Below are positions 49,805-64,000 of a stretch of DNA of 64,000 nt, piece by piece; positions within the stretch are counted from its first letter, which is position 1; the number at the start of each line of letters is the position of its first letter. The notes beneath the pieces are model-generated. The model did not search any database, was not told where the DNA came from, and was given only the letters and a program-made list of their open reading frames with translations. The stretch is from Hyphochytrium catenoides (taxonomy: Eukaryota; Protista; Hyphochytriomycota). Where the stretch lies: assembly GCA_900088475.1 (NCBI GenBank), contig FLMG01001193.1:1-64000 (forward strand), read 5' to 3'. A program made the translations under genes and the position numbers.

Positions 49805-50727
49805 CCGATAAGCGTTGAAAGTAAGTACCAGGCGCTCTGACTTGTAAGTCTCGCCAGTAGAAGTGGTCTAGTGGCATTAGAAGAAGAGATAACATAGCAC
49901 CGCCGCTGTCATTCGCGGCCATCGAGGTCTCCAGACGCTCCTATAGATAGACTTTGGATCTAGAACGGAGCACTTCCCTCCCTTATTATCAGAACCTCCC
50001 AGCATCATCAGAACTTCCTGGAACAACGGAGATTTTTTCTGACATCACTGCCCTTCTATAAAATGCTTCAAGGACAAGGTTTTCCTCACCTTTCTACCAC
50101 CCAAAGCTGTGAAATACTGTTTAGAAACACGATCACATTTTCCTTGAATATGGAGAAAGAGCTACCTTGAAGACCCGGTAAAAACCGTGCCAGGGTTTCC
50201 TACTGTAAGATTCCTCCCGACATTACGATTTAGAACCGGATATTTGGCGAAGGGGTGAAGTTTGGTGAAAGGACGCGATCGGCGCACGTGACCTGAGCTC
50301 GCTCGCTCGCTGATGATTCTTTCCTCTTGTGACTCTTCAAGAGCCTCTTCGTCCTTGCCTCCTTGCCTTCCGAGTTCTGAGGGTCGGATGACCCTTGGTT
50401 TTAAACTCTAATGAACTCTGGACCCACAGCGCTACAATAGCAGTAGCTCTTGCTGTCAGCATCTCTTATCCTTAATAAGACTTCAGCGCTTTTTGCCTCA
50501 CCTTTCTGAATTGGGCTCGCTGGTCTTTCATTACCAGAGGTACGGGAGTCTAATGACACCTCAGGGTTCAACTCTCGAACGAATCAGTCTGTCCTGTATC
50601 TGAGCATTCGGCTCTTACTCTTTGAAGGCTTGGATCTGACCAAGACCTTTTAGGTCCATTGACTCAAGATTAGGGATCTCTCAAAAGCAGCACTACGTTG
50701 CGTCGTACAATTTATTCGTCTATCAAG

Positions 50728-52482
50728 ATGGTGAGTCGAGCCTCTCTCAACTGCGGGATGGCGCTGGTGGGGATTGTGTGCCTGGCTGCGGGCACGTCAG
50801 GCGCCGAAAGTAGTGCTCCCTACTCCGGTGCGATCAAGTACTGGGTCGACCCCGACACTCCTGAAAGTGCTCACGCAATGGTAGCCACAGATGGCACCAA
50901 GATGATCCTAGTTGGCAGTGATGAGTTTGATGAAGAAGGAAGAACCTTCGCTTCTGGAGAGGATAAGATGTGGACGGCTTTGGACACTCCTGATATAACA
51001 AACCAAGCGATTGAATACCTGCATCCTTCGATGGTGACTACAGAGAGTGGGAACCTAAAGATGACTCTCTCTAAACAGATGATGGGAGGGAGGGAGTATG
51101 TCGGTGCGTCCATTCAGAGTTGGAATAAGTTTTGCTTCACTGGTGGGATTGTTGTTACTAGGAATTTATGGCCCAACGCTACGGGTACTTGGCCGGGGGC
51201 ATGGATGATAGGCAACCTTGGTCGACCCCAATACGAAGAGTCATGCAGGGGCGTCTGGCCATTCAGCTATAACATCTGTGACAAGAGCCCGGGAGCTAGT
51301 GGTCAGCGCATCAGCGCTTGCAACCCTAACCCTGGAGTTGGGCTGAACCCTAACCAAGGTCGTGGAGCTCCAGAGATTGACATCTTGGAGGCATGGGCCA
51401 GCCCTTCTACATACTTCTTCCCATCCTCTTACCAAGTTGCACCTTCCCTTCCGTTATACTTCAAGCCCTATGACGGACTGAAGCCAACGCAGCCCTATGG
51501 TGGACCACAAGCTAGGTCGTGGTATGGGGACGTCAAGTACGGGACGGACATCAACGACTGGTACGGGCATAACGGCGAGGGCTACTGGTCCAACGCTATT
51601 GCTAGCAAAAAGGTACTTACCTTCGCTGAGAGCTCGCAGTACAATGTGTACGCTGTGGAGTGGAAGCAAGGCGACACAGACGGATATATCAAGTTCCTGC
51701 TTAATGATCAGCTGTTGCTCTCCATACCGGCCTCGGCACTAAAGGGCAGATGCGACCCTGATGGCAACTGCGTTGGAGATAGGGATATTCCGAACGAGCC
51801 TCTCACCTTTATCTTCACCATGGCCCTTGCGCCTAGTTGGGCCGGAGGCGCTGCGGGACTAAGTGAGGTCCCAGCCCATTTCTACGTAGATTACATTCGC
51901 TGGTACCAGGATCCTGAAAAGGTCAGCATCGGATGTGATCCCAAGGACTATCCGACCAGGAAGTATATTGAGGCCAACCAGAAGCTTTACGGACCTCCAG
52001 CCTTGCCGACGCCACCAGAAGAAGCAACCTATTACTTCAGAAGCTCTCTTCCTATCGCAAAGACCCTGCCGTCACCTACCAAGACGTCTCCCTCATCTCC
52101 TGATAGTCCCAATAGCGAGACTCCTTCACCAGATATTGTGAACTCTGATGGAAGTCCGCAGCCGACCACCACGACGACGGATAACCCAGATAAATCATCA
52201 TTTTCCGGGCTCTCCTTAACGGCCAAGATGGGTCTTATTGCCGGAGGGAGTGCTCTATTGCTCGCCCTGGTTGCTGGTCTTATCATTTACGCTGTGCGCA
52301 TGAGCAAGAGAAGGAACCGTCATGATGACGAACATCCTGAAGCTTCTGGCGGAGCCCAACAGTCCCATGAAGAGACTCCCAAACCAGCTGCAACCACCGG
52401 GACCTATAATCGGACGGATTCAGTGAGTGGCCCTACTTCATCGACAGCGGCTACTGATGCCGCTCAGATAAGCAGTGTGTAG
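50728..52482 (+). CDS. KRE6/SKN1-like GH16 beta-glucan transglycosylase, type I membrane protein, no intron in CDS
   Basis: WVDPDTP, LVGSDEF, QSWNKFCFTGG, WPGAWMIGNLGR, WPFSY, GRGAPEIDILE, VDYIRWYQ, GCDPKDYPT. N-terminal signal peptide, S/P/T linker, TM. Confidence 0.92.
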   Translation: MVSRASLNCGMALVGIVCLAAGTSGAESSAPYSGAIKYWVDPDTPESAHAMVATDGTKMILVGSDEFDEEGRTFASGEDKMWTALDTPDITNQAIEYLHPSMVTTESGNLKMTLSKQMMGGREYVGASIQSWNKFCFTGGIVVTRNLWPNATGTWPGAWMIGNLGRPQYEESCRGVWPFSYNICDKSPGASGQRISACNPNPGVGLNPNQGRGAPEIDILEAWASPSTYFFPSSYQVAPSLPLYFKPYDGLKPTQPYGGPQARSWYGDVKYGTDINDWYGHNGEGYWSNAIASKKVLTFAESSQYNVYAVEWKQGDTDGYIKFLLNDQLLLSIPASALKGRCDPDGNCVGDRDIPNEPLTFIFTMALAPSWAGGAAGLSEVPAHFYVDYIRWYQDPEKVSIGCDPKDYPTRKYIEANQKLYGPPALPTPPEEATYYFRSSLPIAKTLPSPTKTSPSSPDSPNSETPSPDIVNSDGSPQPTTTTTDNPDKSSFSGLSLTAKMGLIAGGSALLLALVAGLIIYAVRMSKRRNRHDDEHPEASGGAQQSHEETPKPAATTGTYNRTDSVSGPTSSTAATDAAQISSV

Positions 52483-56131: not shown

Positions 56132-57238
56132 ATGTGTAAGCCGGTGATACAAAACACCAAGTTTGCAGCGGCCTCGGCGCCGTTTTTCGTCGGCAAGAAC
56201 CCAGGTCTTGCCGGTCAGCCTTACAATGGCGGATTTGCTGCAGGTTCACCATACACCAATGCGGCACCTTATAACCCCAAGCAGCTCTATGAGTTCAACA
56301 TGGTTCAGACACCAGAGGGAAAAAATGTGAAGCTGGATCTAAATGCGGACCAGCTGTTGAACCTGTGGACAACCGTCAAGGATGTGAACGTTGTCGCACC
56401 CGCTCCAGTCAACTGTGCTCCTGTGCCGGTGGTTCCTGCTCAATCATTTGAAGAGCTCGCGCCTATTGAGGCATCTGCTATGAAGAATGAAGACAACTTA
56501 ACGTTCGATGACCTTTCTCTAGAGTTCCCGGAACTGCAAGATACTGATATCACCCCTCTTTTTGACATCTTGCTGGACGATGATGTCGCTGATATACTCA
56601 GCGAGTTTGTTGAAAGTGACAGCCTCGGACAATCTAGTGGCACGGCAGTCAAAGCCCAGTCATCTCAGGTTCAAGCCATTTCACCCAAAGCCAAGTCTAG
56701 TCATCACAAGATTTGCAGTCATGAGGGCTGCACAAAGTATGTGCGATCTCGTGGACTGTGCAAGGCCCATGGAGGTAGCCTACAATGCGTTGTTCCCGAC
56801 TGTGGCAGACAGAGCCAGGGAAATGGCTTGTGTATTAAGCACGGTGGTGGCCGACGCTGCGAAGTACCGAAATGCAATCGCGCCGCTCAGTCGAATCATA
56901 GATGCAAGAAGCATGGCGGAGGTCAACGATGCACAGTGGAGGGCTGCTATAAGTCTTCTCAGGGAGGCGGCCTCTGCCGGTCACATGGCGGTGGACAACG
57001 CTGCGGAGCCCCAGGGTGCAGTAAGGGGGCACAGCGTGATGGCTATTGTGCAGCTCACGGTGGCATTCGTCTGTGCGCAGTGGAAGGCTGCACAAGAAAT
57101 GACCGCGGTGGTGGACGTTGTGCTTACCACGGTGGCGGTAAGAGATGCAAGGTAGAGGACTGCATGAAGCCATCAAGAAAGCATGGACTCTGCGCCTATC
57201 ACTATAGAGCAATTGAAGGTCCTCAACGCCCAAGATAG
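56132..57238 (+). CDS. WRKY19-like Cys3His (C-x4-C-x9-C-x2-HGG) repeat protein, single exon
   Basis: Seven 24-aa repeats such as CTVEGCYKSSQGGGLCRSHGGGQR, preceded by an acidic-hydrophobic stretch. No WRKYGQK motif. Confidence 0.88.
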   Translation: MCKPVIQNTKFAAASAPFFVGKNPGLAGQPYNGGFAAGSPYTNAAPYNPKQLYEFNMVQTPEGKNVKLDLNADQLLNLWTTVKDVNVVAPAPVNCAPVPVVPAQSFEELAPIEASAMKNEDNLTFDDLSLEFPELQDTDITPLFDILLDDDVADILSEFVESDSLGQSSGTAVKAQSSQVQAISPKAKSSHHKICSHEGCTKYVRSRGLCKAHGGSLQCVVPDCGRQSQGNGLCIKHGGGRRCEVPKCNRAAQSNHRCKKHGGGQRCTVEGCYKSSQGGGLCRSHGGGQRCGAPGCSKGAQRDGYCAAHGGIRLCAVEGCTRNDRGGGRCAYHGGGKRCKVEDCMKPSRKHGLCAYHYRAIEGPQRPR

Positions 57239-57522: not shown

Positions 57523-60500
57523 TTATCGAAGTAACTTTGCCGTGAGGTCACTCTTGATAATTGAGATCGTGCCTGCTTCCTTCAGCTCACGCTCGGTTAC
57601 CATTCCCTTGCTGCGCTTCACATTCGGGTTCCCAGTCAATCTTTGAGTGGTATCCTATGATGTAGGCATGCAGGGAAGTGGGGACCGTCATGAGGTACAT
57701 AGTACTGATGTAAGTACCATAGGGTTGCACTGTGTGCTCACCGGTTTGTTGTTCCCTTGGCCAGTGATTGCTGGCAGGAACCCACGCTCTGGCTCCGGAG
57801 GCTGGGTGTCTTTCTCCTGCTGCTAGAGATCAGCAGCAATGTTAGCAAAGCCTACAAAGCCTTGATGATGTTTACAGAAGAAACGTAACACACCAGCCTG
57901 ATCTTCTCTCCTTCTTTCCCTGTGAGAGCTAGGTCATCTGGCTTAGCCTCCGTTTGTCGAAAGACGCCATGGCCAGTAGTTGCTCCGATGGGTGGTGGAG
58001 GAAGCCGAGTAGGCTCTGCAAGGTGCACATAAGGTCTATCACGTGGCTGCTTACGCTTCCCACTCTCAGGAGAGAGGCGCCCTCCCACGCCACGGCTACT
58101 ATCTGGCTGTTGGTCTTCGGAACGAGCGTGTCCTCCAGAATCAGTGAGCGCCACGTCCCTCGCTCTCTGGAAACATGGGTAGAATGGATGCAGGGCCCGC
58201 GCAAGAGAAATGAGACGTAGAAACACAAAATGGAGGAAGAATCATGGGAAGGAGGGAGAGAGCGGGAGGGAACAGAGAGAGGAGCGAAGACGAGAGAGAC
58301 AGAGAGAGAGGGAGAGGAGGGGAAGGAAGGGAACTGAGGTGAATCCGAACACTGATCTTGAACAGGCATCAATGCTTACGCGGCTGGGGACGCGAGGTGG
58401 GCTCCAAGTTTTGCCGCCAGAATGCTGCTGACCCCAATCGGGGGAATTGATTAGCTCATAGTTCAGATCCTCCGACGCCTGGGCCTGGCCCCTCGTTGCC
58501 TGCGCCCTTCCTCCAGTGAGCCCATCTGACACTTGGCCTGATGACGACGGGGGCCGTCTAGAGGATAAAGGGTGACCAAGATTTGCGAGGTGTTAGCTAG
58601 AGAAACTAGGTAAGGGGGGGAAGATGGCGGAGTGCCATGTGCTCACTTGTTACTTGTCACGGACTGTGGGCTCTTTGGTCGAGGGCTACCTCCACTTCCG
58701 CTGGCACGTACTGTGGTGGTTGTCACTACGGACCCTGTCAGTCCTAAGACAGGCAAACGAGGTTAAGGAGGAGGATTAGAACAGTCTCTTTTCCAGACAC
58801 TTGTCTAAAGCTGAGAAAGAGCTAAATGGTGACTACCTTACCTTTAAGTCCGCTGCCACCTGCCAGGGCAAGCGTGTCTGGCGGTTGATCCTGTACGATG
58901 ATGGACGTAGACAGGGCATTTGTCTCTAGCAGCTTCTGGTGGAGCTAAACGGGAGCGAGAAAAAGAGAGCAGCATTAAATATGTTACGTGCAGACCTATC
59001 ATCATTAGAGCAGAAAGCTGTAAGCTTACCTGAAACTCTTTTTTGCTCATGTGCCTTTGGTCCTCTATCGGCTCTGGACCCTTGCGAACTACATCGCCGT
59101 ATCGAACCTCAACACCGGGAGCTAGCTTAATGGTCGCATCTAACGGCGGCTGATATGAAGCAGGTGCCTGCATTATGTAAGAAGATGAACTCAGTTTAGG
59201 TGTGAGTCACCACGAAGATAAACGTGTTAGGGGACAACCCTGCACCTTAAAGAATTCTTTTTGCGTTGAAGCATTGTCCCCTTGTTGCTGGTTCTTGTTT
59301 CCAGATGTTGACAGTGTCCTCCCGCGCTTTGTGGCTTTCTCGGCTACGACGTCTCTTCCTCCAGATGCCGAACTTATAGGGTCTGCCACCCTCACGTCGA
59401 GTTCGACACTCTGAGGGGGTAAATGATCCAAAAGCTTGGCATCTACCACTACGATGGAGCCATCAGTATCAAGCTGGTACTCTTTTCCCTTCATCTCCCT
59501 AGATAGTTGCTCAAACCTATTAACAGGAAGTCAGGATCTGGGAGGAGGTAGAGCATTAGACTAAAACAGACCTCTCCCGCTCATCTTGCTCTCTTTTCTT
59601 GATCTGGGCCAAAAGCTCCCTGTTGGCCTTGGCGGCTTCCTCTTCCTCTCTTAACTGGGTTTCAAACCATGTCTCTACTTTCTCTCCCTGCTCTTCTTTC
59701 TGTGCGAGAAGGAATAATGGGGAGCATGAGTGCCATCCCTGCCACCTTGATGTCATGAGCCAATGGACACTTACTTGAGCAGGGGAAGCAGCAAACTTTG
59801 GGGTCTTCGGCGTGGTTGGTATCTCCACGATCTGGGTGATATAATGGACCTTGGGAGGGCGGAGATACGAAGCCAGAACGGAGAGAAAGGCCATCGCAGT
59901 TAAGAAGATGGCTTATCCATGGTTGCAGAAAAAAGTAGGAGAGGTGCTCCTAGCTAGGAGGTTGTTTTGCTCACCTTCTCAGCGCCATTAGTAGGGTCTT
60001 CAACCTTCTTCTTGGCATTTGGTGACGTCCTCCGAATGCTGGATTCGGATGTTGATCGAGGACTAACAAGTTCCGCTGTCACATTTCTAGTTAAAGAGTG
60101 GAAGGAGTGCGTTTAGAGAAGATTGGAAGCCCCAGCAGTCGCAGGTTCGGCGGAAACCTTTTGGACCCGTTATTTTCCATCCTAGCCCTTCGCTTTACGG
60201 GTATGACATGCGTAGCCCATGTGTCTAGCTGCGATGGCTCTGGGAGGGTGAGTGTCGAAGGATCTTCTTCTAATTCAACCTATCGGAGTTAGGAAAGTCG
60301 CTTTAGACCATAGAAGCACGTCATGTGAGGCTAGAGCCCCGATCACTGACCTCGCGATCGGGCTCACTAAGCGCAATGCCTAGCGCTTCATACACTTCGG
60401 TGAGAAGCTCAATAGATGTTAGGCGTTCTTCCTGGTTGTGAAGGTAGTGCTCGTAAAAAAGAGCTGATCCGCGCTGAATAATGTCCTCGACCACATAATG

Positions 60501-60593
60501 GGCCGCAGACTCAGCCTCCCAGAAAGAGGACCTCTCTGGCTCCGCATGTACTGCAGGCACAGTCGGGGCGCCTCCACGGTGGGCTGAGCTCAT
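57523..60593 (-). CDS. conserved hypothetical protein, C2orf81/DUF4639-like N-terminus (multi-exon)
   Basis: AAHYVVEDIIQRG..FYEHYL, EEDP...PEPSQLDTWA..VIPV, YQLDTDG, IKLAPGV..KGP..MSKKEF. Family recalled from motif resemblance only. Confidence 0.6.
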
Positions 60594-61652: not shown

Positions 61653-62778
61653 ATGTCATATCATGAGGAGGAATACGCTGTAGCGCAGCAGCAGGACGAG
61701 AGCGAAGCTCCTCCAATCCCGAGGAGGAAGCTGAAGCCAAAGAAGCAATTAGATATGGAAGAGCCTCCTTCAGAAGAGGGCATTCGAGAACCCACCTTAG
61801 TTACTCTCCAGAGGGACAGGCCTTCTCCTGTTAAGGGCATCAAGAAGCCGCCTGTTGATTCGCCACCTGCCATCGTCTCTTCAGAGTTCCCCATCCTGGT
61901 AAAACTGAGCTTGATCCCCTATCTGGGCCCCGTTAAGTCCTGAATTTGTTCCCTGTTAGGAACTAGTCCCAGACACCGTGATAGGCAAGACTGTCGTGTT
62001 AAAGGGAGAGCTGTCATTTGACAAGTTGCTCAGAATTGATGGTCGGTTTGAGGGAGACCTGGTCTCTAATGGAAGTCTCATAGTAGGGCCATCAGGGGTA
62101 GTGATAGGGCACATCGAAGGTAGGAAGACCTGCCTTTATGACTCTAGTTACGAATTCAGTTCGTGCTGACTAAAATCTTGCCTTCCCTCAGACTTTGAGG
62201 AAGTCCTGGTGGATGGCAAGGTCTACGGAGATATTCTGGCGACCTCACTCATTATGAGAAGCAACTCACAAGTGTACGGAAACGTTAACACGAAGAGTCT
62301 TGTCATGCAGTCCAACTGTGTCTTAGTTGGCTACGCCTCTGTTCACCCATATGCTCCACAAGAGGTAAGACTCGCACTTCTGAACCCATCAAGTAACGAC
62401 GACTGAAAAGACCTCGCTATCCCCTCTCGTCTCAATCTGTCATCTATGCAGCCTACCATACCCGCTGATATTGCAAATGCGATCAAGCGGAGGGATGCCG
62501 CTCGCTATCAAGCGCAGGAGGAGACTGATAGACGTACGAAGGAAGAGACAAAGACCAACACAGCTGGGAGCGCTTCAGCTCCCGTCACTCTCCCTAGCCT
62601 TGTGCCTACTAGTGCTCAACCGCCTTCCCAGCCTCCTTCAACTCCGCCTCCTCCTTCAACTCCTGCTACACAGCCACAGCCATCAGCGGCAAAGACAGAG
62701 GTGTCCTATTCGCCATCGCCTCCCACGCTTCCACCCGCTGATGGCAAGGCCAAGAAGTCGTTTTTTGGGAAGAAATGA
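61653..62778 (+). CDS. bactofilin (CcmA-like polymer-forming cytoskeletal protein), 4 exons
   Basis: Spliced core TVIGKTVVLKGELSFDKLLRIDGRFEGDLVSNGSLIVGPSGVVIGHIE|DFEEVLVDGKVYGDILATSLIMRSNSQVYGNVNTKSLVMQSNCVLVG. GT-AG introns at ~61899-61960, 62120-62191 and 62364-62451. Confidence 0.9.
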
Positions 62779-62878
62779 AAAGGGTCTTTCAGCCATCACG
62801 CCGTCTATCTTACTGATACTGTCTACATTAAAAATATTCTCATAAATAGGGTAGGCATGTAGCTCAGTAATGGATATA

Positions 62879-62925
62879 NNNNNNNNNNNNNNNNNNNNNN
62901 NNNNNNNNNNNNNNNNNNNNNNNNN
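62879..62925. other. assembly gap (47 N)
   Basis: Run of N. Confidence 1.
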
Positions 62926-62929
62926 AGCA

Positions 62930-64000
62930 CTAAAACGCTGTAGGTCGTCTTCGGCCGGTGTACTTGCTGTCAGCCTTGACAGCTTTTCCTTTTCGCCGCT
63001 GCTGCTCCTTCTTGTTGGCAATCCAGTCCCTGAGGCGGATCAAAGATGATCAGACCTCCTTAATGAATCGGGCAGCGTGTCCCTCTATCAAGCTATTCAT
63101 GCTTACCTATCTTTGATACCCACCCTCCGGTTCGACTTTGACTGAAGAGGGAACGGAGGGAACAAAAGTTAGTTTTGATGGTACACTCGTACGTGTAACA
63201 GGTTATTCCGACCTTCTGTTTTTGTCTCCGAGCCTCAAACGTCGCTGTTGAGGAAGCTCCTTCAGTTCCCAGCCCACGAGGCAAGGTCTGACTCTCGGCA
63301 TACCCAGCAAACAGACAAAGATAGTATTTCTTGGCTTTGGTACTACGGATAACATTAGATCATGGTCATGTTGCAGATGTACGGAGCTCCCGGCGACCAA
63401 CCTGTTTGGATAATCAATGACCACGCCACCAGAGAAGCCATTCTTCATCGCCACGCCAGAAATGAGCTCAAGTTGCTCGGCATTCTCTGGATAGAGCTGC
63501 AGAACCGCCCTGGTAATAAGAAGTAAGCTAATGTCATGAGATTGTAGGAGCACAGGCTCAGACCCGCACCTGCTGCCGCGTTTGAGGCTGGTATAGAGAC
63601 TCGAGAAAAAGCGATTTAACCGCGTCCTGGAAGAATCATGGGTTAAGGCACTTTGTAGTTGTCAATTCGTAGACTCAAGATTTGATGACCTTGCCGTCTG
63701 TTCTTTCTGAGAGGAATAGCAGAGCCACTGGACGGCTGAGATGCTGATAGCCCCGTCAAATACACCGCTGCGAAAGGGGAGCCCGGTCCCCATGTCCTGT
63801 GAAAGTGACGAGCCGAATTAGTGCTAGGGAGCCTTGCTTCACTGACAAGTCAACCTCCTTACGCTTAGGCATAAATCCCCATCTCTATCTCTGTCAGCAG
63901 CTATTTCCAGCATGTGCTTGCTGATGTCCAGTCCAATCCAAGTGTGGCCAGCTTCCTCTATGGCCACTGCATGGAGGAGTTAGCAGCCTACATCAGCAAC
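62930..64000 (-). CDS. BUD23: 18S rRNA guanine-N7 methyltransferase, 3' portion (5' end outside the window)
   Basis: [89 protein letters not shown]. Confidence 0.95.

Follow-up and report, generated by a model that had tools for sequence, protein, structure and literature searches.

The window (the whole stretch of DNA analyzed here, 64,000 nucleotides of Hyphochytrium catenoides) carries on its forward strand a four-exon gene whose translation gives a bactofilin of ~301 residues (the exons sum to 906 nt, i.e., 301 codons plus the stop). It is a genuine, intron-bearing nuclear gene belonging to the stramenopile bactofilin (PiBac) family, and we consider it very probable that it has been inherited vertically in a stramenopile lineage, probably one related to the oomycetes. 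Few bacterial cytoskeletal proteins have been adopted and retained by eukaryotes; bactofilins are one such case, and the locus adds a spliced member from a probable sister lineage of the oomycetes. The family, its occurrence in eukaryotes and its filament formation have been in print since 2019, and the window gene leaves that picture unchanged; a hyphochytrid source would widen the range of the family slightly, inside the bracket to be expected.

Table 1. The bactofilin gene and its surroundings in the window (positions counted from the first nucleotide of the window)
Feature	Positions	Strand	Remarks
SKN1/KRE6-type GH16 beta-glucan synthesis protein	50698-52482	+	Intronless; upstream of the bactofilin gene
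WRKY19-type zinc-finger protein	56132-57238	+	Intronless 368-aa ORF with seven repeats (PF24906, 177 bits)
Four ORF pieces (90-112 aa)	58844-60593	-	Directly upstream of the bactofilin gene
Bactofilin gene	61653-62778	+	
Exon 1	61653-61898	+	82-aa N-terminal tail, acidic and Pro-rich (translation)
Intron 1	61899-61959	+	61 nt, GTAAAA..TTAG, phase 0
Exon 2	61960-62119	+	Lead-in PDTVIG and first half of the bactofilin beta-helix
Intron 2	62120-62191	+	72 nt, GTAGGA..TCAG, phase 1 in an Asp codon
Exon 3	62192-62364	+	Second half of the beta-helix, then clade-specific motif SVHPYAP
Intron 3	62365-62451	+	87 nt, GTAAGA..GCAG, phase 0; predicted only
Exon 4	62452-62778	+	108-aa C-terminal tail, TGA stop (translation)
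N run (sole one in the window)	62879-62925		100 nt past the stop codon
Bud23-type 18S rRNA methyltransferase	63201-63994	-	Spliced, convergent neighbor; continues beyond the window end

All three introns are bounded by GT..AG with pyrimidine-rich 3′ ends, and when the gene is left unspliced, stops interrupt every frame (ORF list). Translations of the exons were searched piece by piece. Intron 2 cuts the bactofilin domain at about position 49 of the Pfam profile PF04519, and its removal is supported by homology: the exon 2 piece aligns to residues 86-135 of a transcript-derived relative, P0015 (64% identical), and the exon 3 piece, beginning with its third residue, to residues 140-192 (47% identical), so that four P0015 residues lie between the two stretches, as many as are left unaligned where the window pieces meet, and the alignment runs gap-free across the intron. 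The metagenomic contig of the closest relative (P0001, on contig L001) has a 51-nt GT-AG intron (2061-2111) in the same Asp codon and phase. At the site of intron 1 that contig has no intron; its ORF runs on without interruption and lines up colinearly with the window sequence once intron 1 is removed, which likewise supports intron 1 by homology. Intron 3 and with it the entire C-terminal tail are predictions from splice signals and codon usage, including an in-phase open frame of 110 codons. The first-pass annotation had proposed an intron splitting the core and two further introns; of the latter, intron 1 thus stands on homology, and intron 3 on splice signals and codon usage only. A codon-usage score trained on the long ORFs of the window was above zero in the model frame only, for all four exons.

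Both halves of the domain were recognized independently as bactofilin. The exon 2 piece scored 41.9 bits against Pfam Bactofilin (PF04519, DUF583; E 1.2e-10, positions 1-48 of the 98 in the profile) and the exon 3 piece 30.8 bits (E 3.6e-7, positions 50-96), each exceeding the gathering score of 27.9 on its own. No significant family was found for either tail in the Pfam search (exon 1 and exon 4 pieces), and NCBIfam contains no model for these bactofilins. Searched against solved structures, both pieces matched only the bactofilin of Thermus thermophilus (6RIA), colinearly and with their order kept (residues 14-57 for the exon 2 piece and 64-109 for the exon 3 piece). Together with the gap-free alignment to P0015, these matches bear out the original claim of a complete bactofilin core interrupted by an intron; a different beta-helix family was considered as the identity and rejected. 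As a proxy for the fold, clade member P0015 was modeled with AlphaFold using alignment A1, which gave an all-beta helical core (pLDDT 93-98) and tails near 50; the structures most similar to this model were the bactofilins 6RIB, 6RIA and 2N3D (target TM-scores 0.85-0.92). The beta-helix prediction made at the outset is consistent with this model: judged by proxy and alignment, the core of the window protein would be a right-handed beta-helix of about six windings. The Leu of CVLVG in exon 3 aligns with the polymerization residue F105 of TtBac (F130 of BacA), and this interface residue is likewise aliphatic, not aromatic, in most clade members (VVxVG in alignment A1).

Used as the query of an exhaustive phmmer search, the exon 2 piece matched 694 proteins at E <= 0.001, none of them identical to it; the window protein is absent from the collection. 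The best 150 of the 694 matches split into eukaryotic and bacterial groups. P0001, the closest relative (78% identical over exon 2), lies at 1655-2130 of an AT-rich contig of 2.1 kb (L001; ENA ERZ19033097), with intron 2 and without intron 1, and the contig probably derives from an organism related to that of the window and as yet unsequenced. Named members of the eukaryotic group are Chrysoparadoxa, Tetraparma, Triparma, Heterosigma, Ectocarpus, Discosporangium and Tribonema, joined by MMETSP transcripts and by an oomycete-type protein, P0013, which is close to the Pythium and Phytophthora sequences in the supplement of Deng et al. Among the bacteria, the named members are Chlamydia abortus, C. 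psittaci, C. buteonis, C. muridarum, Candidatus Clavichlamydia and MAGs of Chlamydiales and Chlamydiae, as well as MAGs of Verrucomicrobia and Victivallaceae, one of which (P0065) is among the sequences nearest to the eukaryote clade. The idea of a purely chlamydial sister group was dropped when these Verrucomicrobia and Victivallaceae members were found, and the claim was widened to PVC bacteria. Identity of the exon 2 piece to PVC-type bacterial bactofilins is 60-70% (60% to P0030 of Chlamydia abortus).

Trees were computed from 114 hmmalign match columns, with 102 rows in a careful IQ-TREE run and 202 rows in a quick tree; the exon 2 and exon 3 pieces were entered as separate rows, and 13 distant bactofilins, from a scan of genome contigs with P0009, served as the outgroup. 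Over this short alignment, and for a taxon set made up of matches to this query, both window pieces fell into a eukaryote clade of 65 rows (UFBoot 100 / SH-aLRT 97 in the careful tree). Eukaryote and PVC-type sequences together were split from the other bacteria at 99/91 and 100/96, and the eukaryote clade was nested in a paraphyletic PVC-type grade (nodes 96/87 and 93/71). Within the clade, the exon 2 piece grouped with P0001 (98/93) and the exon 3 piece with the oomycete-type P0013 (90/80). The quick tree agreed with the careful one. Introns within the domain lie at other positions than in the window in Chrysoparadoxa and Tribonema, and there are none in Tetraparma or in the bactofilin gene of an oomycete-type contig, L010; since these positions differ among lineages, the introns look like gains made after the gene was acquired and not like a shared old set.

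The eukaryote clade has a motif set of its own in alignment A1, consisting of an N-terminal PxxPx[KR], a P[ED]T[TV]IG lead-in to the core and [NS]V[HN]PxAP after it, and the window protein carries all three (PPIPRRK, PDTVIG and SVHPYAP). Its N-terminus is acidic (MSYHEEE...), and the MF[KR][KR] membrane-targeting start is absent. The motif PPIPRRK, which fits PxxPx[KR], and a basic patch, KLKPKK, occupy residues 19-31, and the motif is kept in P0001 while the flanks diverge. PxxPx[KR] is the class II SH3-ligand consensus, and the motif could therefore be an SH3 ligand, as far as a pattern match can suggest. PxxPx[KR] was found in the N-tail of 65/96 members of the eukaryote clade (median position 6) and in 9/70 PVC-type bacterial proteins, whereas an MF[KR][KR] start was found in 1/96 and 61/70, respectively. 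On these pattern matches, the bacterial start appears to have been lost and replaced by the polyproline-basic motif in the eukaryote clade. C-tails have a median length of 78.5 aa in the clade and 4 aa in the PVC-type bacteria. Both termini of the window protein had been described as Pro-rich from the sequence, and the counts agree (17% Pro in the N-tail and 19% in the C-tail, with few hydrophobic residues). The C-tail consists of a charged stretch followed by a Pro/Ser/Thr-rich low-complexity stretch, with KKSFFGKK just before the stop. The membrane-targeting sequence at the N-terminus of bacterial bactofilins has the consensus MFSKKKK (eLife 2025, PMC12448750), which KKSFFGKK resembles; we hypothesize that it may act as a lineage-specific anchor. 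KKSFFGKK is not conserved in the clade, where P0097 alone has a similar end, and it was dropped as a feature of the family.

Bactofilins are overwhelmingly bacterial, and the Hyphochytrium catenoides assembly consists of short-read scaffolds with N gaps (PMC5795050), one of which begins 100 nt downstream of the stop codon. A bacterial gene arriving as contamination, or stitched into a eukaryotic scaffold as an assembly chimera, would account for such a setting. That gap, however, lies between the bactofilin and Bud23-type genes, and 62.8 kb of gap-free DNA holds the bactofilin gene together with the eukaryotic genes upstream of it. These include the SKN1/KRE6-type ORF, in which a signal-like start is followed by a Ser/Pro/Thr-rich stalk and, at the C-terminus, a membrane span (its best match in the collection is 53% identical and the next about 35%), and the WRKY19-type protein; proteins with CxxHGGGxRC repeats are common in stramenopiles. 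Base composition is that of the neighbors (GC 0.52, GC3 0.52), and contamination is therefore excluded, to near certainty, by gap-free contiguity with eukaryotic genes and matching composition. Also against it are the three GT-AG introns with an unspliced frame broken by stops, nearest relatives that are eukaryotic and in some cases transcript-derived, and the recurrence of the bactofilin-Bud23 join on an independent contig. On that contig, the oomycete-type L010, the gene after an intronless bactofilin is a convergent methyltransferase, the same arrangement as in the window, and the L010 methyltransferase matches window positions 63994-63201 in tblastn with 48-55% identity (E 1.4e-54), interrupted by introns. 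Because this Bud23 microsynteny is common to both, it supports the orthology of the bactofilin genes as well as the scaffold join across the N gap. The first-pass annotation had placed the gene among eukaryotic genes and judged it not to be bacterial contamination; its neighbors on both sides and the evidence from contiguity and composition uphold that judgment. The synteny shared with an oomycete-type locus further argues for inheritance from an ancestor common to this lineage and the oomycetes. Gene content in the window is of stramenopile type, and both the N-gapped short-read scaffold and the oomycete-type synteny are compatible with Hyphochytrium catenoides. A recent transfer from bacteria into this lineage, independent of the oomycete and ochrophyte genes, could explain why the exon 2 piece is nearly as near to PVC-type bactofilins as to many eukaryotic ones, but we consider it highly improbable, given that both exon pieces lie inside the eukaryote clade and outside the bacterial grade, that the three eukaryote-specific motifs and long tails are present and the MF[KR][KR] start is absent, that the locus is syntenic with L010, and that introns are present and codon usage resembles that of the host. 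The four minus-strand ORF pieces listed in Table 1 look like the exons of one gene, and no Pfam match was found for them at E <= 0.01.

Two other explanations accept the gene as native and question its product. It might be a silent or decaying relic from which the filament protein is no longer made: the amino-acid make-up of the exon 3 piece was odd in the tree check, NTK stands where relatives have TCK, and Leu stands in place of Phe105 of TtBac. Nevertheless, no stop interrupts any of the four exons, whose codon scores are positive in the model frame only, the protein retains the conserved glycines and the hydrophobic positions of the core, both halves clear the Pfam cutoff, and the short N-terminal motif has been conserved amid diverged flanks, which makes decay very unlikely. 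Somewhat less improbable, although still unlikely, is that intron 3 stays unspliced, in which case the protein would end 15 residues past the domain without the Pro-rich tail and KKSFFGKK. Exon 4 is without homology support, and a second open frame crosses the region (62471-62845); second open frames are frequent in low-complexity DNA. Splicing is favored by a consensus donor (GTAAGA), by a pyrimidine-rich acceptor before CAG and by the in-phase join to the 110-codon frame; codon usage points the same way, with exon 4 scoring +0.225 in the model frame (vs -0.106 and -0.31 in the others) and read-through of the intron -0.24. Long low-complexity C-tails are, moreover, typical of the relatives.

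Eukaryotic bactofilins were described by Deng et al. in 2019 from stramenopiles (oomycetes, Ectocarpus and Aureococcus) and ascomycetes, in species lists that contain no hyphochytrid (bioRxiv 10.1101/617639), in keeping with the initial remark that such copies are known in stramenopiles and are functionally little understood. [quoted passage not shown] A paper on halofilins repeats the same picture of eukaryotic bactofilins (PMC11459167). PiBac (PITG_07992, UniProt D0N980, Phytophthora infestans) falls into the same eukaryote-only clade as the window protein, and its motifs NPPPKPKR, PETTIG and NVNPQAP (Deng supplement) parallel PPIPRRK, PDTVIG and SVHPYAP. It differs in being 203 aa long with a short C-tail, compared to the 108-aa C-tail of the window protein; the oomycete-type gene of L010 is intronless, compared to the three introns of the window gene; the oomycete signatures RIEGEFEG and an extra Gly in ITGGK are replaced in the window by RIDGRFEG and VDGK. 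Ochrophyte bactofilins (Ectocarpus, Aureococcus, Triparma, Tetraparma, Heterosigma, Tribonema, Chrysoparadoxa and Discosporangium) share the clade, the motifs and long low-complexity tails with the window protein, but their domain introns are elsewhere or absent, and polymerization has been shown for none of them. The closest bacterial relatives, chlamydial BacA_CT (CT276) and other bactofilins of Chlamydiota, Verrucomicrobiota and Lentisphaerota, have the PETT[IL]G lead-in and the LLRIDGxFEG core in common with it; as a type they are without the polyproline motif and without NVxPxAP. TtBac (6RIA/6RIB) and Caulobacter BacA (2N3D) have the same fold, by alignment and proxy model, at about 25% identity, and possess short tails and an N-terminal membrane-targeting sequence, the latter absent in the window protein.

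For the window protein we infer polymerization, tail disorder and binding to partners. Its ~110-residue core would fold as a right-handed beta-helix, and the molecules would join end to end, with no need for nucleotide, to form non-polar filaments, as demonstrated for bacterial bactofilins and, in vitro, for PiBac. Both Pro-rich tails (about 85 and about 105 residues) probably lack an ordered structure and serve as docking arms, and PPIPRRK could link the filament to proteins with SH3-type or other proline-binding domains. Comparison across the family offers, besides, a likely PVC donor, the putative exchange of a membrane anchor for a proline-rich docking motif and a possible re-invention of an anchor at the C-terminus. 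One tentative scenario, which we hold to be possible rather than probable, is that all stramenopile bactofilins go back to a single ancient transfer from a PVC-type donor, after which the MF-basic start gave way to the polyproline-basic motif, long disordered tails were added and KKSFFGKK arose in this lineage. No paper linking stramenopile bactofilins to PVC bacteria was found in the literature searched, and within that literature the PVC affinity and the exchange of N-terminal motifs, as suggested by a short alignment and pattern matches, are apparently not in print.

A second group of stramenopile bactofilin paralogues, of the Ectocarpus D7G0L1 type, was also encountered (P0110, P0144, P0146, P0026, P0066, P0070 and P0115); many of its gene calls break off directly behind GDLKNMQ, suggestive of an intron conserved at that point. 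Two loci from uncultured PVC-type bacteria have their bactofilin gene a short way downstream of dnaA (L002, 4409-6684; L013, 3811-6597, the latter with a proC-like gene between the two). The presence of bactofilins in L002 and L013 contrasts with a 2020 statement that Chlamydia-related bacteria are without a homologue. Chlamydia bacA_CT is likewise found downstream of dnaA (dnaA2-bacA; bioRxiv 10.1101/2020.10.19.346502), making three cases of a PVC-type bactofilin gene 3′ of dnaA, and the linkage seems to be older than the Chlamydiaceae.
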